Shown here: positions 1,987-13,790 of the stretch, in pieces | Layout of the letters: the number at the start of each line of letters is the position of its first letter | How positions within the stretch are numbered: position 1 is the first letter of the stretch | DNA from: Klebsormidium nitens | Lineage: Eukaryota > Plantae > Klebsormidiophyceae | Reading direction: 5' to 3' | Assembly (NCBI GenBank): GCA_000708835.1 | Contig: DF237046.1 | Span: 70,079 to 134,078 of the forward strand | Length of the DNA: 64,000 nucleotides | Program-made: the position numbers and the translations under genes | Notes under the pieces: generated by a model | What the model was told of the DNA's origin: nothing | What the model saw: only the letters and a program-made list of their open reading frames with translations | The model's database searches: none

Positions 1987-3724
1987 CGCAGCGCAGGTGG
2001 ACTGAATCTAGCGCAGGCGCAATTTCGATTGCTTCACAAATGGTGCTGGCCGGACCTTCAACGATCAGAAGAAGGGAACTGATGCAGTGAACAAGGTTGG
2101 AGTGATCCTACTCACACAAGATTGCAAGTCGGGCCTCGCTGGATTATAGAATTAGCCACGATATTGGCACGGTCTGTGTAAGCAGGCTTACGTAAGGGAC
2201 AAAGATTGTCTCGCGGCGTTGTCTGCCGTGGTAGCTCACATGCAAGAAACCCAGCATCTTTCGATAACGTGTACTTCAGCAAAGTGGGAAGAACGCCTGC
2301 ACCATCTGATTGCGTACTGTAATCCACGGTCGTCATCACTCCGCTCTCGGCCGCGCGCAATGTAGTCGCGCAGGAGCTGGCCGAAGTTGGTAGACTGTAT
2401 CATGTCGCTTTTGTTTGCCCCGAGCTGTAAAGAACCAAACCGTACGTACTTCAACCTGATAACCTACACACTGGCGCACAGGACCATCCGTTAAGGCAAC
2501 AAGCATGCAGGCTGGGCTGCTGCATAGACATCGGTGTCGTTAGTTGCGGCCATTACATGTAATCATGAGAATCAGTGAAATGATCGTAGGTCGATCTCGA
2601 TACTGATGATACATCTCTGCTTTTATTGCAAAGTTTTACTGGAGCAATGGTAGTACTGTATATACGCAAGCGTGTGGCCGACAGATTCTTCATGAGTAGA
2701 CTATATAATACGTAGCCACCAAAAATGAGGCATCTCTCACATGATTGTCGGTTGACGAACCCCTTCTCACTTTAGGTGCAGGGTCATGTTATGACGAGAA
2801 CGTCATAGGTGGAGTAAAGTCGTGAGGTGCAAATGCCGCAACGTACTATACATGTCATAATCTGCGGAGAATCTGATGCTAGATCGACTTCGTCGTAATG
2901 ATCAGCAACATTCGGAATCACAGGAGGACGTGCCTCCTCTGAATCTGGCCAAATCAGAGCCGACTCGTTCTCACTCGTTGTCACTTGTTGTCGTTGAAGC
3001 ATTATTTGAGCTGATGTGGCACTTTGTGATTGGTCGAGTCGCCGGAGAAATGCGACACCGGCCACTGTGCTGCCAACACAGCAAGTGACGGTCATTCAGG
3101 ATGTTTACTATGACGATTGACATACTGAGAGGCAAGTTCAGACCTCCAGTTGTGCATGCCTCTGGACTACAATCAGCCTCCAGACTTGACTGTAGCTTTT
3201 GCTGGCGACTAATAAATCTCCATGTTTGCAAGGGTCACTCCGTGTGTGTCCAAATTTTATCATGACGCACGCGGACGGCTCAGGAGACCCACAATACCCA
3301 TGTAATATGAAAATCCAGAGAACCACGCCCACCTCGCGCATTCTAGGAGAAAGATGTTTAATCGGGTTGCTATAAACAGATTAGGAGTAATCATGGGCGG
3401 GAAGAATAGTCAGGTTCACGAACATGCTGAGAGTAATTCCAGGCGCAGGGTCAAATGAGGGAGGTGATTCGACTCTTTGGCGACTAGCGTCGTTTCAGCT
3501 TTGGCAACTTGAAATTGTCATTATGTCCGTCTCGTTTCGGCCAGGGTTGCATAGACACTTCTTTGTTGTCAATTCCTTCTGTACAGCAAGAAGAGGGCTG
3601 CAATCAGCAAAGATGATGGTACTTCCATTGGGAACTTCAAGCCCCGTTCAAACGATTGAAGATACACAGGTAACGTGAGTCGTCTAGTGTGGTATTCATG
3701 CACGGGAAGGGCCCCAGCTATTGT

Positions 3725-6601
3725 TCACTCCTTGTCAGGGATACGCTGCAGCTTTGTCAAAGCCAGAAAGATTGCTCGTGACCTTATCGCCGCTCCTCCA
3801 ACGACGAGATAGTTCGGAAAGGGTGCAGACGGCCAAGCCTCCGACGCCTTCAGACTTGATCTTAGTTCACCACCGGGCCAGTGGACGAGGTTGTCAATCT
3901 GCAGATTCGCAATGGTTTGTGTTGTCAATTTGGGATATGGTCGAAGAACTAGATGGGCACCAGGCAGTAGCGTGTTTCTGCTCCTTATCTGCGGCCGACT
4001 CTTCAAGGTCGCAGCCCTGATCGAGGATCAAGTGAAGGAATCCGCTTTTGGTTTCTTCTGTTGGAAAGATGAGGGAATCTGCCGCAACATTCAAGGGCAG
4101 TATGAAGCAAGATTGACCTTCCTAAATACTGACTCTGAGAAATTTACTGTCGCAGTTTTCTGAGACTAAGTCAACGTTTGTCTTGAATATCTAAATCTAT
4201 TACTGTTACCCCTCAAGTTCGACCAATCAGAGAGTCTTTCTCACCGCTTCATTTCGAAGGCTCTCGCTCGCGTAAAAGGCGACGAACACCTCCTGGTCCT
4301 TCCCGGAACCCTCGCCTGTCTTGCTGCCTCCCGGAGCTTCTCTCCCTACTTGTTTGCCCTTGAAGATACAATAGCCCGACACTTTACTCCAGGCCAGATG
4401 GTCGGAGTCTGTTATCGTTGTAACCGAATCCCTCAGCTCCATACACCTCGGCCACTCGACGTATCCCAGAACGTAAGTCGGTAGATACAGCACCTCCCAG
4501 AGCAGTCGGAGCGCCAAGTTGTCTTCCTCAAACTTATCCAGATCCAGGGGGAGGCTGAACAACAACTGATTGCTGTTCCCATGGAGCGACCTTTCCATCC
4601 GCCAGATGTCAACCCGATGCTCATCCGCGATAACCGAGACGGCGAAATTTCTCTCGGGCTGTTCGTCGAGCACCCGACCCATACTCTCACGCGCTTGCGC
4701 AAGGGCAACGCTGTAACCCTCCCGGTCCAGCCGGGCAATGAACACCAAAGGGGAGACGACGCCCTCGTATCCGGACCCTGACTCTCCTGTGTTAATGACG
4801 GTAGCTGCATCTCGTTGGTATTGTAAATTACCGCGCCACACCAACCGGCTTCGAGGTATGAGCTGGGTTTTCGGAGGGGCCCAGTACATTGAGTAGAGCA
4901 GACCGAACAAGATGGCCTGCGTTCTCTTTTCTCCTTCCAGATCAGTAACATACGGAGCTTTTTCGGGTGCCTTCCCCCGCTTTATCTTGGCGGCTGCCCG
5001 GTATGCGTGATCCGCGTAGCGCATGAGTAACTCTTCGAGTGAACAATCCTCTTCCCTCAGAAAATGTTCGATCTCGTTGAGCCACACTCGAAAGCCAGCC
5101 TCCAAACTCCGCTCTAGCTCTGTCTGGGCGCGCGGATCATAATATGGAAGGCCTGCAGTCAAGATACAAAGCAATAACTATAAGGGTCTCCCAAATAAGG
5201 GAGAAGATGGAAACCCTCGAAAGTCTTTTATTATACCCGCACATTATTGCTGCCGTTCAGCGTGGAGAAGACTGGTCGAGCACTTACAATGGAATCGGAT
5301 GCTCTGCTGAAAAGATATGGACTAAAGAGAGGTATCACGACAACGTTTTTAAATTACGTGTTAGCCTCTTTTCTCCAGGTCATGCATCCCTTCATTAGCA
5401 CTGGCAATCATCAGTCCATCCTTTCCTGTAAGCCTTAGAAAAGACATGCTTCATTAGCGGCCCCTTGTGCAAAGAGTCTGGATGAATCATGGAGCTGGTA
5501 AACCGGCTCCCTCCTTTGCCCACACAAGGAGAAGTGCTCGATTGGGGCCGCTACCAAGGGAAGGAGGCTTTCTGGATGCCTGCCCTCAAATCCGTTGAAG
5601 ATGTTTGAAATAAACGGAGTAGAACTTCTGCAGCTTTTAACACGCGTTACCGTGTTGCACCCATACAGAACCGATGCCGAAGAAGGAAACACTGAAGCCA
5701 AATACGCTGTGCTCTGAAATCTTGGCTGCTTTTAAGGCAAAAGGAATCGGAGAAACGGTCTGTTTTGTGGGCGCTACTTTTTCACACGTAAAGGCTAGCT
5801 TTTAAACATCAGAGTCATTCTTAAGGTGGACGAAACTCTTCCTCGTCAAGCCCATCAAGAAACTTTTGGAGAAACACTTGCAAACTGTCGTGCCGTGGAC
5901 CTTGTTGTGACAGGGAGGCCATTCGGTGTAAACCTTCAGATCTGGTCGCATGTAGGTCCAGCTTCTCGGTGCTCACCGGCTTCTTCTAGCCACTTAGAAA
6001 GCTCCACAGCCAGAGACCAGCCAGGTACGCTCCTGGCCAAGTCAGGCTCTTCGATGCCTTCATTCTTGCCCTGCGCTGCCGCTCGAAAGAGTCGTCCTGC
6101 TCTCAGCGCTATCTCTCCACTAAAGCTTCCACGGAAGACCTGCCAACAACAAAAACGTCGTTGCTTGAAATGGTTAGAATCATTCCGCCCAGATTTTAAG
6201 ATGATTCAGAGCTGATTGAGAGATGTTGAGAATTGATTGACATAGAGTGATACGAGTGCATGTTACAAATTCAGTAGTCTTTGGGTCCGTTCAGTTATGT
6301 CTGGTAAGCTGCAGAGCTACAAATTGCACTTAACTGAATGCCCCAAGTCAACCAGTCGTCAATATGACCGTACCTTTGTGAGACTCATCCTTGCGCTGTT
6401 GTCTGCGAAGCTGGTCCCGGCCCGAGCTTGACCCGGCAAGGAGACCTTCCTTGCTGGAATAAGGCCTGTCCTGGACCGCAACTTGAGCGAGGCAATCTCA
6501 CCGGTGAAGCCGGAGCCGTTCAATTTTGTTAAGTGTGGCCCTTTCAACGCCGTGCAGGCCATGACAGTTCGACCACCATGCAGAGCGAGGCAGGTCTCCA
6601 T
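3725..6601 (-). CDS. Orphan gene B: 4 exons (6601-6374, 6139-5977, 5152-4245, 3898-3725), ~490 aa; transit-peptide-like leader + degenerate REase-fold domain + truncated kinase N-lobe
   Basis: Canonical GT-AG sites with phases 0/1/0 give one open frame of 1473 nt. Exon structure and phases are identical in paralog C. Shared motifs include EAGFRVWL, LEGExRTQAILxGLLYSM, RDAxTVI, EQPxRxxxVSxIxDExRxxxW, PLDLDxFEEDNxALRLLWxVL and IDNLxxWPGGELR. Confidence 0.8.
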
Positions 6602-8339
6602 GACAAGACCTGTGAAGCCTGCGGAAGTTGCTTGGCTTTCTTAGAGGGTGTGCAACGAACTGTCTTTCCAGAAGGCCAATCTTGGGTGCAGGAGAGGTTT
6701 CGAAAGCTTCTGCAGTCACCCAGCTGAGCCCATTTCCACCACAAGCCCCCTCTTCTAGCACTTCCTTGAAGTCCAAAGAAGTGGGGCACCCGGTCTTCCT
6801 ACTTGAGGAAAAGCGTTTCCGCCCAGCACCTGATTAGTCCGAGTCCTGTTATGTGATGCAGCGGAAATGAGAGAGCAGAGATGGCAGCTTCCGAATACAT
6901 CCGAAGCTACCAAGGAAGCGTGCGCCAGCTTGTCTTCGCTGATCTCTCTACTAGGGTCTGCCCTCCTTAATTTCTCGACCTCCTTGTCTGCCACTTGAGT
7001 GCTATATGCCTGCAAGACGTGACTAGCTGGAAGAGGCACTCTCGACCTCCTTCGCGCTTGACCTTCGACTAATCACGGAAGGCACCCGCATGCATGGTCC
7101 CATTGAATCCTTAGACATGACCATTTCCCGTGGTTCTAGGAAATAGCATTGGCTGTGCCGTTGGATGACCGGGATTCGCTGCCTCATTCCAGGATCGAGT
7201 AGCGAGTACGTCTCTCCCAGTCCTTCTGATGTACTCACCAAGATACAAAATGACGCTTTCCCGTGTAAAGAGCAGATGCTGACCCAACACGTACCTTACC
7301 TGCCGTTCAACCAGATTCCTGTGCTTCTTTTCGCCAGAGGGACAAGAGCTCGCTATGAAAGCAAGGCGGCACGGGGCATCGGGCGTGAACTGTAAGGATT
7401 GGTTCCAGCTATCTTACCAGCGATGTCAAACGGCCATGAACAAATCCTTCGATAGAACTCATTCCCAAAGAGGTTCTGACGTGTTTAGAATGGGTTCAGA
7501 TGAGTCGTTTTCCTTGAGCAGCATCATGCCTCGGGGCTAGGAACAACAGGACATGCTGGACGGTTATTCGTGCCTGGCTTCCTTCATGAGCATATTATCA
7601 GAATCCGGTCATACACGTCGGGTCTCGTTGGGTTGAACTTGCTTCCGTCCCTCGACGACGGGCTGTCAACTATTTGCAGACGCTTCACTTTCGTACTTCA
7701 TAACGTTCGGTTTGGTATCTCGCAGTCGCGCTGGGAATGGACCGTTACTTTGAAAGCTTGTCCGTAAGTGATTCGCACATTGCTTGCTTTAAAAACTATG
7801 TCGTAGCCCATGGCCCGCTTTTTGGCAAAGCAGTGCATATCCACCATATTTGCGTCGTCATTGATACATTTTAGCTTTATGCATCAGAAAAGTGCACCGA
7901 CGAACTTCTAGCTCCGTGAGCTAAGCAGATCTGCATAGCCAGTACGGATGTACACAAAAGCGCGGAACTCAATCAATGTTCGAAGAATGGTACTGTACAA
8001 TGAAGCATCTATCAAACATCATGGTCATGTGGGTCCGTATCACCACTCACGCAAGCATTTCTGGGTCGGGTAAGACTTCAACATCAGTCGATCAGTCGTG
8101 AGTCAAAAGGAACATATAGCCATCAAAGGCTTATTTCTACCTGACTTCCGTCCTGTTGAGAACCACAACTCTTATCTACAGTCGGATCGAATCAGACTTC
8201 GAGTTGGAAACAATTCGACCTGGAATTGATTCTCCGTCCAAAATCACCCTAGAGCTACACACAGAAACAGGTTTCTAGGAAATTGGCACCGACCACACAA
8301 TCGGGTCTACTGACTTACATTAACGTACCAGCTGAAGAT

Positions 8340-10562
8340 CTAGTCTTTATCAGTATCAGGGGTGGGCTGAGTCAGCATCGTCAAGGCCGCCAAGGTTGCA
8401 GATGATGCCATTGCCGCTTCTCCAACGACGAGGTAGTACGGAAGGGGTGTAGACCCCCAAGTGCCCTTCGTCTTGAGAGTCGTTCTCAGTTCGCCACCGG
8501 GCCAGGACAGTAGGTTGTCAATCTGAATATTGCGATGGATTGACATGTCAGACTCAGAACGTTTGGTATACAAGCCTTTTGAGAGGAGAAAGGGGCTCTA
8601 AAGTCACATTCGTTTATAGGGACGAGCAAGAATGACTACGTTCAACTGAGTCAAGAAACAGAAGTAGAAAGAACCAGACGGTAGGGACTCTCTGATTTGC
8701 CCATCAGAGAGTCTCTCTCACCGCCATTTTCCGAAGGGGCTTGCTCTCGTAAAAGGCGACGTACACCTCCTCTTCCGTTCCGGATGCCTCGCCCGTCTCG
8801 CTGCCTCCCGGAACGGACTGCGGACTGACTTTCGGGGCTGCTTTTTTGCCTTTGAAGACACAGTAGCCCAAGCTGCCCCAGCCCACATGGGCAGTAATCG
8901 TGATAATTGAATCATCAACCTCCATCTGCTTTGGCCAGTCGACGCAACCCCAATCTTTAGGCGAGGAACAGAGCACCTTCCAGAGCAGTCGGAGCGCCCA
9001 GTTGTCTTCCTCGAAGTAATCCAGATCTAGTGGGACCCCGTATAGAAGCCGATCGCTGTACTCATCGGGCGACTTTGTCGTCTGCCAGAACTCAATCCGC
9101 TGCTCATCCCCAATTATTGAGACAACAGATCTCCTCCCAGGCTGTTCGCCAAACACCTGAGCCTTTCTGTCTTGCTCTAACTTGATCGTATCAACACTTT
9201 CATAATCACGGTCCAGCCGAGCTGTGCAACCCAAAAGCAAAACGACACCGCCGTATCCGTCCCTTGGATCTCTCTCAGCGATAACAGTCACTGCGTCTCT
9301 ATGATTTCGTACAAGACCGTGACGGGGTGGGAGGGTATGGGGTCTGAGCTGATGGCTCGTAGCAGGAGCGCGGGACATCGAATAGAGCAGACCAACTAAG
9401 ATGGCCTGTGTTCTTCTCTCCCCTTCGAGATTGACCAGATGCGCGGCCTCTTTAGGCGCTTTCCCCGGCCCCATTCTGCCGGAAATCTGAAACTCGTTAT
9501 AGAAGCGCATGAGCAATTCGCTTATTGAGCACTTCTCTTCTCTCGACCAAAGTTGTAACTCGTGGAGCCACACCCGGAAACCAGCCTCTTCAATCCGCTG
9601 TAGCTTTTCCTGGGCGGGCGATGAACGATCGGGAGAGCCTGCAGGAACCAAGCAATGGGGCTTTCGAAAGTGAAGATATATAGCAAGCCTCGAACAATCC
9701 GTATTCAGCCCCAACACAGTGATGCCGTTTCGATTTGAGTGAAGCTGTTCAAGCAATCACACTTGGGTCAGATTATGTGCAAAAGACGACTGAGGACTGT
9801 GAGTGCTGAATAGCTTTCTCTCATCTGGGTCATTTCATTAGTGGATGATATGCCCTCAAAAGCTGCTGACAGGTCTGTAGTGGGAGTTAGCAATCATCAA
9901 CTTTGTCCTGCTACAAAACTCGCTGCAACAGCTAGGCGGTTTACAGAGGTTGAATTCGAATCTTGTCACATCTTAGATCCAAAGGTTTTCAGACGTGCTC
10001 ACCTTCTTCTTCGGCGGATACCCACTGATCAGAAAGATCCCCAAATAAAGACCAGTCCGATTCACTTCCGGCCATGTCGGGTTCTGGGATGCCTTCATTG
10101 TTGCCCTGCGCTGCGGGTCGAAGATGTCGTCCTGCTCTCAGCGCCTCTCCTCCAGGCCTCTCAGGATTGACCTGCCAGATAGAGAACGTCTTTGATGTCT
10201 TTGAAACCTTCTGAGACAATGTTCGGACGTGGTGTCAGTGCTTGTCCAGCATCACTAGCTCTTGCGATACTATTCCCCGGTTTCACCAAGTATGTTTGAA
10301 GCCGATGAGAGCTAAAGGTGACGCCCTTTCTGCATGTTTGTAAACGCCTCACCTCTGCAAAAGTCGTCCTTGCTGCGCTGAAGTGGGAGAAGCTGGTCTC
10401 AGCCCGAATTTGACACGACAAGGGGCCTTCTCTTGTTGACATAGGGTCTCTCCTGGACTTCAACTTTAAGGGAAGCTTTCTAAAGGAGCATTGTGAGTGT
10501 TGCCCACTCAACCCCGTGCAGGGCCTAAGTGCTTGAACCCCACGCAGTGTGAAGGCCTCCAT
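8340..10562 (-). CDS. Orphan gene C, tandem paralog of B: 4 exons (10562-10353, 10171-10003, 9638-8722, 8522-8340), ~492 aa
   Basis: Same four-exon layout and intron phases as B, with an open frame of 1479 nt. Roughly half the residues in exon 3 are identical to B by eye. Confidence 0.8.
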
Positions 10563-11825
10563 GATGAGACCCGGTAAAAGCTTCGGAAGTTTGCTTGGCT
10601 GGCCACTAATTCATGATCATGAACTCAAGGGTGTGCTAGAACCAGTCCTGAAAAGGCCAATATCTTAGTCTTGGGTGCGTTCCTGTCCTCAAACGCTACT
10701 GCAAAAATAACCCAGCTGAGATGCGTCTCAGCACAAGGCCCCTCTTCTAGCTCCTTATTCAGGTCCAGAGAACTTGGGACGCCCGGGTGGTTCTCTACCT
10801 ATCCGAGTAACTGGAGCGTTTCCGCCCAGCAACCAAACCCGAGCCCGGTCATACGCTGCAGCGAAAAGGTGACGGTCTTGCTTCAGACGCCTCCCAAGCT
10901 AGATAGAAAGGGTGCGCCAGCAAGTCTCTGCGGAAAATCCTACGCGCGTCTGGCCACCTCTCTCAGTTTCTCTGCTATTGTTTGCCACTCGAAGGGCAAG
11001 GCTTGCACAAGACGTGACTACATGGGGGAAAGTTCTCTCCTTCGCGCCTTTGACTTGCACGGAGAACACCGCTTTGTGGTCACTCTGAAAGTTTAGACAT
11101 GACATTTCCCGTAATATCAGGGGGATCCAATGGCGGAGGCGCTGGATCATAGATCGGATCCGTTGATTCGCAGCCATGCGAATCGCTTACGTGTCTCCAA
11201 GTCCTGCTTGATGTATCACCAACGATACGCGATGACGCATCCACGTGTACAGAGCAGATGCCGAACCCAAAACGCCAAACCTGCCATACCAAATTCTTGT
11301 CGATTCTTATCCAATAGAGAAACAACAGCTTTTTTTGAAAGCAAAGTACGTAGGGCTTGATCCCATGTTGCAGATCTGTGTTGGGGTAGACTGTAAGAAG
11401 GATTACAGCTGTCTAGTACCAGCGATCTCGAAGGCCATTGAATCAAGTAACAAGAATTCAACCCTAGAAAGATCTTGACGTATTTGATCGGGGTTGAATG
11501 AGAGTCAACTCTGCTTCCTCTGAGCTGCATCAGGCGTCAGGAGGACGAACTCTCCTTGCTCCTCCAGAGGACCCGCAAGAGGCGCTCCGTCGGTAAGCGC
11601 GTGGGCGCCTCCGAGTTGCGCATCGCACACGCGAACGCAACGTGCACCTACCTTCTGGATTGGCGCACGTATTGGCTCATCCGAAAGAAGAACAGTTCTA
11701 AGCTGCCAAAACGGTCGCCTAAGTATGCTTTACGTTTAACATGGGCGGTCGACAGGACTGCCCCTCATGTCCATTTACCAATAAGGAAGCGTCAAGCGGA
11801 GGCCGTGCACGGTTCAATGCAGTGG

Positions 11826-13790
11826 GACACCTGTGTATAGCTGCCTTCTGGTAAAGCAGTTTCGCTGTTTGGGAAGATGGCCGTAAGTTTGAGGCGCGAA
11901 GCTTTCAAGGCCCATTCCAGGGCACCTTCAATCGGACGGAACGGTTCGGATGCATCTGAACGGATGGTCTCAACAACGCTGTTGGCAACAGGGGACATGC
12001 AGGAAGGGCAGCCCGGAAGCTTTGTCTTATCTTATCTCATCTCGGTTGCACTGTGACAGGTGCAATGGCTTCCCTCCTTGTCGGTCGTTTCGCTGGCAAT
12101 AAAATATGAACCTGGTTGTACGGTGGGAAATAACAGCTGCCGCGTCTTGTCAGAACGATGAAAGGACTGGTGATCTGACACCCATCTGAGTCGCAGCTTT
12201 GCCTAGCCCCACTGCTATAAGCGGCTTTACTTAACCCAGCCAGCTGTCCGACTCTTGTCTTCCTCCAAGCAGCCATAAGCGCGGGAAGCGAGAAGTCAGA
12301 CGTGGCAACACCAGAGGAGTAACACGTGTCGCCCCACCCTGGAGGGATCCCCTTGAAGCGTATAAGGTTCCCCCCCGCTCGACCACGCCAACCACGCTGA
12401 CAAGGAAGACACATCTTGAAAAGCCGGGTAAAGGACCTGGCCGCCGGCCTGCATGCGCCAGGGGCCCTGGCGGAAAGTATTGAGGACCGTTTTGAAAGGA
12501 CCATTATATCTTCTTGTGTGCTGGAATCCATTCTCCAGGGTGATTGATCTCGCCCTTGGAGACGAAGCCATCTTTTGCGAGCCTGAAAGCTTGCCGCTTT
12601 GCATCTGAGTCTGGTCTTGTGAGAGAGAAATGCTCCAAAGATCAGTGAGAGTACTTTACCCGATGCCTTTAGAGGACATGCGGTCCGCTCTCTGGCCAGG
12701 CCCTATCTTCCAACCAGCCTGATCATGAAGAGCAACTTGGTTCTGATTTGATTGTTGGATTTAATACCACAACAAACAATTGATACGTGCTTCAGAAAGC
12801 TCAAAGACGCCCGAAAGTATGTTCAACCGACTTCGTGAGTCGGCTGCACCTGGAAGGCCGCCGTGACTTGAATCCGCAAAAGATACCAGGCACAGTAATT
12901 TGAGAGCATCATCTCGAAGCGTCCCCAGCTGCTTTCTGCAAATGGTAAATCTGGGCGGTGCATACCGGTCGATGTCCGCCCACTTAAGCATCCAATTCAA
13001 GTCCCGTAGCTTCTTTGGAAGAGGGAGGCGGTCTGTTGTCCCACAGGCTTCATATTTGATCACAAGATATTCGAATTTCTGCACTTGCTTTCGAGTTCGA
13101 TCCGGAATCCGTGAGGCAGAGTACCAAAAACCTCCGGGAAATGCGATCCTTCCGTCTGAGCATTTTGGAGGAATCTCCAGCATATGTGCTCGAAGGCTTG
13201 GCCAGCTACTAGCGGTTTCTGCATACACGGATTCTTACTTCGGTTCTGATGACTACCGTGGATTCCGAGGGCGCCGGCCGCCTCCGATACAACATCCCTC
13301 GGACTTAGTATTCCATGTATTTGAGCTAAGACCCTTTCAAGAGGCAGTATTCCATGTATTTGAGCTAGACCCTTCCAAGAGGCAGATCATTTGTGTAAGT
13401 ATGGCGTTGAAGTTCGAGTATGCTTTTGTTCAAGAAAAAATGGCGAAGCTCGCCTTCCGGGGGCTCTGACCCACAAAAAGAGAAAGTGTAGCAACGGTGA
13501 CATGTTGTTCCGTCTGTGCTTCAACGTCATCTACGCCATCGAGATCATCATCATGGGGCTTCTCGGAGGCTTGTTCAGTGCGGATCATTGGCACCAAGTA
13601 GAGCTGGTCAGAATCATCTCGAGCATGAGACTCCGAAATGCTCGTTCGACCATCCACTTTTACGCTGCTCGATCGAACGGTGCGACGTTTACCACCGAAG
13701 TGACCTGTTCATCGTCGATCAAGATATCCGCTAATCGAACGGTGGATTGCTGGCGAAGTGCACACCTAAAATTTCAACTTATGTTCTCAG
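11826..13790 (-). CDS. Probable multi-exon orphan gene D (start, end and some exons unresolved)
   Basis: A phase-consistent chain reads ...RLADILIDDEQVTSV | LYLVPMIRTEQASEKPHDDDLDGVDDVEAQTEQHVTVATLSLFVG | ETASSWPSLRAHMLEIPPK... (the last part is ORF 12761-13228). There is a further exon-like block at ~11970-11826 (VVETIRSDASEPFRPIEGALEWALK...). No family recognised. Confidence 0.35.
13307..13383. repeat. Two-copy ~39-bp tandem repeat (AGTATTCCATGTATTTGAGCTA(A)GACCCTT(T/C)CAAGAGGC), inside a predicted intron of gene D
   Basis: Read directly from the sequence; the copies differ by one indel and one substitution. Confidence 0.9.

Follow-up and report, generated by a model that had tools for sequence, protein, structure and literature searches.

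Modules that join a nuclease fold to a protein kinase recur in eukaryotic conflict systems, as Crinkler effectors, Spok drivers and large FunK1 expansions. Two neighboring genes of the streptophyte alga Klebsormidium nitens, here called B and C, raise the question of whether such a module can be kept after both of its catalytic parts have been lost. Both lie in a 64-kb window of contig DF237046.1 (positions 70,079 to 134,078), and coordinates below are those of the window unless another contig is named. The original prediction, made from the letters of the window, saw in them a pair of intact genes encoding a doubly dead effector module. Our analysis leads us, with a moderate degree of confidence, to read B and C as real tandem paralogs that encode a truncated, catalytically dead nuclease-kinase derivative acting by binding.

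Tandem paralogs with four exons each

B (3725-6601) and C (8340-10562) lie in tandem on the minus strand, as do all of their features given below, and each consists of four exons. Gene models built from shared splice motifs yield proteins of 490 (B) and 492 (C) amino acids without internal stops; intron phases (0/1/0) are common to both genes, and all introns are bounded by GT-AG. In B, exon 1 (6374-6601) has 76 codons from the ATG at 6601 and ends at the phase 0 donor AAG/GTACGG (the slash marks the exon boundary), exon 2 (5977-6139, 163 nt) runs from the acceptor ggcag/GTC to the phase 1 donor G/GTGAGC, exon 3 (4245-5152, 908 nt, 302 full codons) ends at the donor GCG/GTGAGA, and exon 4 (3725-3898) begins at the acceptor cag/ATTGACAAC and holds 57 codons plus a stop at 3725-3727. 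In C, exon 1 (10353-10562) has 70 codons from the ATG at 10562 and the phase 0 donor GAG/GTGAGG, exon 2 (10003-10171) has 169 nt and phase 1, exon 3 (8722-9638; 917 nt, 305 full codons) is the sequence used for structure modeling, and exon 4 (8340-8522) holds 60 codons plus a stop at 8340-8342. Exon 3 of B encodes, in order, an N-terminal helical part, a nuclease-fold core and a β unit resembling a kinase N-lobe, and exon 4 of B carries conserved WPGGEL and PFPxYLVVGGAA motifs.

The original prediction had described two intact four-exon genes with the same phases and a third exon about half identical, and our models agree. Its exon 3 donor just before the stop of the open reading frame (ORF) is indeed found, with GCG/GTGAGA five codons ahead of the in-frame stop of ORF 4227-5174, and each of the motifs it quoted could be located at B or C coordinates. 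The two exon 3 ORFs (4227-5174 and 8704-9756) share 47% protein identity (E 3e-91), and B and C are 49% identical over all aligned codons. All six gaps in the exon 3 protein alignment are in frame, with zero frame-shifting differences, and each exon 3 keeps more than 300 open codons in DNA of about 50% GC. DNA similarity between the genes is limited to the four exons and about 0.6 to 1 kb upstream, with 65 to 75% identity in the alignable blocks (B 7364-6392 with C 11344-10374, B 6118-5969 with C 10150-9995, B 5134-4223 with C 9620-8700, and B 3927-3735 with C 8550-8356); the introns of B cannot be aligned with those of C. A tblastn search of the window found no third copy. Pfam gave no family for the neighboring ORFs of the window, leaving the genomic context uninformative.

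A word-index protein search returned a single relative, P0001, which comes from a contig of a related species (L001; Logan, SRR23617307). About 20 kb of this contig run collinear with the window and include both genes, in unchanged order, which dates the B/C duplication to before the two species parted. We name these orthologs B' and C'. B' (L001 15117-17880) is intact, with splice sites and phases as in B. C' keeps every splice site and has a single-base deletion in exon 3 (L001 ~9938-9941), in a segment predicted to be disordered; the pieces on either side of this frameshift were analyzed separately and never mended. A further copy, with the same exon 3 donor and one frameshift (~235-242), lies on a 913-bp contig from a third sample (L004). 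That B and C are genuine coding genes, paralogs in tandem, follows from their canonical four-exon structure with the same phases, their synteny with both orthologs, a ratio of nonsynonymous to synonymous substitution (dN/dS) below 1 and a conserved upstream region.

A nuclease-kinase family beyond the window

To place the two proteins, we relied on an exhaustive HMMER search with an exon 3 alignment of B, C and the orthologs against 1.84 billion (1.84e9) representative proteins. It returned five proteins in total: the two orthologs, the L004 fragment, P0003 (E 4e-8) and P0004 (E 7.5e-5). The original prediction had recognized no described family of this form, and the small yield is in keeping with that.

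P0004 sits on a short genomic contig (L003 1-1603; Logan SRR20309488). For comparison we used PF17667 (Pkinase_fungal, FunK1), a Pfam model of fungal kinases that begins within a nuclease-fold region and extends across the kinase domain. Successive L003 ORFs match this model at positions 8-83, 135-206 and 272-361, three collinear pieces of which the last scores 28.2 bits, above the gathering cut-off of 24.1 bits. The contig encodes ELK, VAIK and HRDVSVGN, in a gene split by two short introns. These matches and motifs identify L003 as what is, judging by its sequence, a genuine and apparently complete FunK1-type nuclease plus kinase, and as a bridge from the B/C family to PF17667. Indeed, tblastn with the nuclease part of L003 finds B (E 2e-7), B' (E 1.9e-6) and C' (E 4e-5).

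P0003, a distant relative, sits on L002 6001-7848 (JGI metagenome 3300060284) and is the sole sequence of its kind found. It has an intact PD…ELK motif followed by a Q-rich helix. Its exon 3 ends at the same place as in B and C, here with CTG/GTGAGC, and the next exon, with AFPYYVVI, is the counterpart of exon 4; it differs from B and C in a different, longer N terminus and a longer last exon. Since P0003 combines the truncated layout with an intact motif, truncation came before the nuclease motif was lost. The original prediction had suggested a search for active full-length relatives; the FunK1-type L003 and the motif-intact P0003 were found, P0003 itself being truncated. Word-index protein searches with the L003 N-lobe or P0003 as query brought back only the queries, and a metagenome scan for further family members found no relative.

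In Pfam, B matches PF17667 at positions 34-83 only (10.5 bits, E 0.25), which is not significant and lies below the cut-off, and C, B' and C' have zero hits to this model. In an ESM Atlas language-model search with B exon 3, PF17667 clusters came first (score 0.95) and made up 55 of 100 hits. A shape search in the same resource, with the first structure model, listed ten rows, eight of which carry PF17667, Pkinase, DUF6826 or a kinase name; two of these eight clusters are from Streptophyta.

The central domain and its PD-(D/E)xK fold

We modeled exon 3 of C alone with AlphaFold2. A first model on a 5-row alignment was poor (predicted local distance difference test [pLDDT] 57.8); with 10 rows, still a shallow alignment, pLDDT rose to 71.2, with a predicted template modeling score of 0.68. 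The model places two long N-terminal helices first, then the core, a linker helix carrying the LRLLW motif, and the β unit. Within the core it predicts a helix at residues 72-88, strands at 97-101, 115-120 and 131-137, a helix at 147-164 and strands at 170-202. This gives the α-β-β-β-α-β core of the PD-(D/E)xK fold, with residues 170-176 as the predicted last core strand. Alignments and model together put the nuclease-fold core of C at 9022-9300 (exon 3 residues 113-205), and alignment puts that of B at 4515-4814.

An exhaustive VIA-align fold search of 48,161 chains gave the nuclease domain of BpuSI as best match (Z 8.7 over 146 residues; root mean square deviation [rmsd] 3.6 Å), followed by DrdV (Z 7.5), a putative restriction endonuclease domain (5.8), HsdR (5.7), McrC (5.5), EcoRI (5.3) and SgrAI (5.0). 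Besides BpuSI and DrdV, more than 20 chains with restriction-endonuclease folds were matched, Cas4 and NucC among them, and such folds dominate the list. Model residues 23-230 superpose on BpuSI 6-172 (PDB 3s1s) and residues 20-226 on DrdV 2-144 (PDB 7lo5). Sequence identity in these pairs is only 7 to 14%, BpuSI and DrdV are bacterial restriction enzymes with active sites, and the resemblance shown is one of fold only.

The central domain is thus well supported as a PD-(D/E)xK fold of the type fused to FunK1 and Crinkler kinases, because profile hits, tblastn, language-model and shape neighbors, and VIA-align agree. The nuclease domain named in the original prediction is supported at this level, and the homology of this part of B and C to bona fide FunK1-type genes is seen in HMMER (E 7.5e-5) and tblastn (E 2e-7). 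Could the resemblance to nucleases and kinases nevertheless be chance, and B and C an unrelated orphan family? The Pfam hits of B and C are not significant, and Foldseek against the PDB returned nothing below E 0.03 for either model. We consider this very improbable, given that the exhaustive profile search reaches a FunK1-like gene that tblastn also links pairwise to B, that the language-model and shape neighbors are nearly all PF17667 or kinase families, and that restriction-endonuclease folds head the structural matches.

Loss of the nuclease motif

Although the fold is recognizable, the catalytic signature D…(D/E)xK is absent from B and C, in which the Asp alone is kept. This Asp lies in RDAVTVI in C (9280-9300) and RDAATVI in B (4794-4814), and in the same RDAxTVI motif in B' and C'; the L004 fragment does not cover the site, and P0003 has PD and P0004 ID. 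At the ExK place, where active relatives have VIELKAS or VELKAS, C has VVLLLGCTARLD (9211-9246), and B has VVSPLVFIARLD (4725-4760), with Glu changed to Val and Lys to Ile. Across the subfamily the site reads VFI (B), GCT (C), AFT (B'), EFT (C') and VTT (L004), versus ELK in both P0003 and P0004. The Lys is therefore replaced by Ile or Thr in all five members, and the Glu is also gone in four of them.

The helix with the QxxxY motif has degraded as well. C has TIKLEQDRK at this place (9163-9189) and B has ALAQARESM (4680-4706), so that at most the Gln is kept (B and B'), compared with QQAVD in P0003 and SQLYE in P0004. Further along, C has EQPGRRS (9127-9147), common to FunK1, and B has EQPERNF (4644-4664). 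These losses agree with the original prediction, in which both the ExK and the QxxxY equivalents are gone.

The kinase-like β unit and the end of the protein

Downstream of the linker, the model and alignments place a β unit in C at 8722-8928 (exon 3 residues 237-305) and, by alignment, in B at 4245-4445. In C the predicted order is β1, the GWGSLG loop (β1 into loop, 8863-8889), β2 with YCVFKGKK, a 23-residue insert of low confidence, β3 and a helix leading into exon 4. The glycine-rich loop had been called degenerate in both genes. This holds for B, whose loop reads HLAWSKVSGY (4371-4400), and not for C, in which GWGSLG is a literal GxGxxG; the motif is literal in C' also and is lost in B. 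The absence of the β3 lysine holds for both genes: at the place of the VAIK Lys there is Tyr in C (VYVAFY, 8749-8766) and B (VFVAFY, 4272-4289), as in B', C' and L004, with Cys in P0003 (VIFC) and an intact VAIK on L003.

Several comparisons point to a kinase origin of this unit. In VIA-align, residues 231-305 match YabT, Sky1p, GAK, Mps1, HIPK3, CLK3 and TTK (Z 3.8 to 4.7, rmsd 2.1 to 2.9 Å over about 50 residues). In hhalign, the family linker and β1-β2 are collinear with the linker and N-lobe of L003 (E 0.012), with a score of 23.9 versus 10.1 ± 2.4 for shuffled sequences, one of 300 shuffles reaching the real score. The nearest language-model neighbors of the C-terminal 100 residues are PF17667 clusters (0.86), which we treat as a lead only. 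We conclude that the β unit is probably of kinase N-lobe ancestry.

The protein ends 57 to 60 residues beyond exon 3 in all four copies, with stops within a few codons of each other. As originally stated, it ends soon after this N-lobe-like unit, and no HRD or DFG sequence was found in the gene or elsewhere in the window. A C-lobe (HRD…N, DFG) was not found by tblastn with the L003 C-lobe, which came back empty in the window, L001, L002 and L004. Splicing to a downstream C-lobe exon was considered and rejected on the same empty search of the window. Pfam has no family hit for exon 4.

Exon 4 itself (3725-3898 in B, 8340-8522 in C) shows low synonymous divergence, with dS of 0.24 to 0.45 versus 0.45 to 0.9 in exon 3, and dN/dS of 0.67 to 0.96. 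An antisense ORF across exon 4 is open in B, B' and C' and closed in C. The conservation of this exon may lie partly at the nucleotide or RNA level.

Constraint on the coding sequence

We estimated dN/dS by the Nei-Gojobori method from counts pooled over exons, with bootstrap 95% intervals; the approach is a simple count, applied here to rather divergent sequences. The ratio is 0.60 for B-C (0.47-0.77), 0.41 for B-B' (0.31-0.53) and 0.44 for C-C' (0.34-0.59), and all three intervals lie below 1. For exon 3 alone it is 0.31 to 0.49, and its helical part, nuclease core and β unit each fall within 0.16 to 0.53 (0.35 to 0.50 for the nuclease core). Introns of C and C' align in part only, at about 70%. 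Taken together with the in-frame length differences in exon 3, these results show coding constraint through most of the history of both genes, and the B-C ratio, with its interval below 1, fits the earlier proposal that selection keeps both copies open.

In C' and L004 the frames are open and conserved on both sides of the frameshift, and the breaks may be either recent pseudogenization or assembly errors. For C', dN to B (0.358) equals that between B and C (0.361), which argues that the break is recent or an error of assembly.

B' has a long branch at synonymous sites: dS is 0.88 for B-B', higher than the 0.66 for B-C. These distances suggest that B' has evolved faster or that some gene conversion has taken place between the two paralogs in the genome of the window.

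Points against a dead derivative and alternative readings

A number of observations weigh against a constrained, catalytically dead nuclease-kinase derivative. On the structural side, the top Z of 8.7 is barely above the level reached by unrelated models, and small unrelated β folds match residues 231-305 about as well as kinases do. Pfam and PDB sequence searches lend no support to the kinase reading (the PDB profile search gave chance uS11 hits only), and an exon 4 profile does not match the hinge/αE region of L003. The kinase N-lobe of the original prediction gained weak support from hhalign, folds and neighbors, and none from these three comparisons. On the genetic side, the short exons 1, 2 and 4 have dN/dS of 0.5 to 1.0, not clearly below 1, and two of the five subfamily copies, C' and L004, carry one frameshift each. 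As for expression, an RNA run search yielded 24 runs with the same species label, each nearly devoid of the sampled words of the stretch, which is not proof of silence. Likewise, four of these runs gave no contig placed on 3650-9640, an absence of evidence rather than silence, and neither the word-index search nor the search of 1.84e9 proteins contained a spliced or annotated B/C product. Finally, an Arg two residues past the lost Lys is invariant in B, C, B' and C' and could rescue some activity.

This Arg (in TARLD or IARLD; Ser in active relatives, ELKASL) is central to one alternative, in which the nuclease has been remodeled and still cuts nucleic acid, the kinase stub serving as a regulatory or dimerization piece. 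The Arg is expected on the same strand face as the lost Lys, where it could supply a positive charge. The invariant Asp of the PD motif, a Glu kept in the first core helix and purifying selection on the core are consistent with a working enzyme, and P0003, which pairs the truncated layout with a full catalytic motif, indicates that the layout is compatible with activity. However, the Glu of ExK is lost along with the Lys in four of five members, and the QxxxY-type helix is degraded. We therefore judge a remodeled nuclease to be unlikely.

The expression results bear on a second alternative, that B and C are silent relics, recently dead pseudogenes whose constraint signal stems from an earlier functional history. 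The locus is in none of the RNA runs found, two very large databases hold no annotated or spliced protein, and the frameshifts in C' and L004 and the only moderately low dN/dS (0.4 to 0.6) would fit such a history. Yet B, C and B' each retain an open frame of about 490 codons with all six splice sites, although their proteins have diverged by about 50%, B/C indels are in frame only, and the equal dN of B-C' and B-C leaves no sign of extra decay even in the frameshifted C'. The upstream region is conserved too, and we regard relics as improbable.

Upstream region and N-terminal exons

A conserved noncoding region lies 5' of B (6602-7364), with a counterpart 5' of C (10563-11344); both are on the minus strand. 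A four-copy alignment with the regions upstream of B' and C' (L001 14522-15116 and 8217-8753) is 65 to 70% alignable among B, C, B' and C' and contains invariant blocks, including TAGTCACGTCTTG, with an ACGT core, and GGTCATGTCTAA. These 0.6 to 1 kb are still alignable in all four copies, whereas intron similarity between the paralogs is entirely gone. The region keeps no reading frame, no repeat of it was found elsewhere in the window, and Rfam has no match in 3000-12000. The upstream regions are probably promoter and 5' untranslated region.

We also considered upstream coding exons and rejected them, because the frame is not kept and, in the four-copy alignment, an in-frame stop lies 13 codons 5' of the ATG of B. 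The homologous start ATG is open in B, C, B' and C'.

The exon 1 peptides (6374-6601 and 10353-10562) are basic and rich in Ser, Thr, Ala and Arg, with few acidic residues; that of B has 11 Lys or Arg versus 3 Asp or Glu in 76 residues. They are near-neutral in sequence, with dN/dS of about 1 for B-C, and resemble an organelle targeting peptide or a nuclear localization region. Pfam returned nothing at E ≤ 10 for the first two exons of either gene.

If exon 1 were a transit peptide, B and C might be organelle-targeted nucleic-acid binders, with the inactive nuclease fold acting on organellar RNA or DNA as in RAP-type folds and the link to conflict gone. Besides this basic, hydroxylated composition and its near-neutral evolution, VIA-align matches that include a FASTKD4 RAP module and mitoribosomal proteins would suit such a role. 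The RAP match is weak (Z 4.2), however, and the sequence kinship is with FunK1-type modules rather than RAP, which makes this explanation a doubtful one, a shade less plausible to us than a remodeled nuclease or a pair of relics.

Comparison with known systems

B and C share with FunK1 (PF17667) the C-terminal half of the nuclease fold, with its QPxR…F…D/E…R…W strand pair, followed in the same order by the L..L…LG linker and β1-loop-β2. They differ in scoring at most 10.5 bits, in lacking the VAIK Lys, HRD, DFG and C-lobe, and in ending about 60 residues past β3. Further, their nuclease Lys is lost, and their host is a streptophyte alga where that of FunK1 is fungal.

In Crinklers of the CRN8 type from Phytophthora infestans, a restriction-endonuclease-superfamily domain is joined to a protein kinase (Zhang et al. 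2016, as summarized in PMC5289972); the review proposes the nuclease to be toxic and the kinase regulatory, CRN8 is suggested to dimerize, and kinase-dead CRN8 is dominant-negative (PMC5289972). Homologues of CRN are reported from lineages that live freely, among them chlorophyte algae and also land plants (PMC12957317). Like the C termini of such Crinklers, B and C would derive from a module coupling a nuclease fold and a kinase; unlike them, they have a truncated kinase and a lost nuclease motif. The Crinkler header (Ubl domain, LxLFLAK motif) and a secretion signal were not found in exons 1 and 2 by Pfam and a visual motif check, made without a dedicated header profile. The label of effector is accordingly not sustained by any header or secretion domain in these exons.

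Spok proteins of Podospora carry a PD-(D/E)xK nuclease and then a kinase in one polypeptide; killing depends on the catalytic nuclease Lys (K240) and resistance on the kinase, and some alleles no longer kill but still confer resistance (PMC6660238). B and C have a similar layout, with a nuclease domain followed by the kinase-like part. A SPOK2_N cluster appears among the language-model neighbors (0.78), below the threshold that the search tool itself sets for a lead. Unlike Spok, to which no significant sequence match was seen, B and C are truncated in the kinase, which is the antidote part of Spok, and are known from sequence only. The nuclease-kinase module is a known one, and its truncated form without the nuclease Lys, kept as a tandem pair, matches no described family.

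Proposed role and implications

We propose that the ancestor of B and C was a module of a restriction-endonuclease fold and a protein kinase, as in FunK1 and Crinkler C termini and with a layout similar to that of Spok. In their lineage the gene would have come to end soon after the N-lobe-like β unit, without catalytic loop, DFG or C-lobe. Truncation would have come first, as P0003 still has D…ExK, and the B/C subfamily would then have lost the ExK Lys and usually the Glu too. Given the lost ExK Lys, the Tyr in β3 and the missing C-lobe, the proteins are most likely unable to cut nucleic acid or to transfer phosphate, and both the nuclease and the kinase part are most likely dead.

What, then, might they do? 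Speculatively, the nuclease fold and kinase stub may bind nucleic acid or another protein, for which we favor a full-length nuclease-plus-kinase protein: B and C might pair with active relatives and damp them, as regulators or neutralizers. A bolder version, to which we give little weight, makes them "immunity-only" derivatives of a nuclease-kinase toxin-antidote gene that, with both catalytic activities lost, would persist by binding and neutralizing active nuclease-plus-kinase proteins of the same genome or invading copies of them. If so, the streptophyte alga would hold a domesticated anti-selfish-element or anti-toxin pair, and the conserved upstream region would give it regulated, possibly stress- or stage-specific expression.

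On our preferred reading of a dead, binding derivative, a natural truncation that lacks both catalytic lysines and has persisted as a pair since before two species diverged amounts to a natural experiment. Retention of the pair points to a selectable nonenzymatic activity in the nuclease fold and the first kinase strands. With P0003, the family would form an ordered series of full module, truncated module and dead module, and the nuclease-kinase module would extend into a streptophyte alga, a member of the lineage that includes the land plants.

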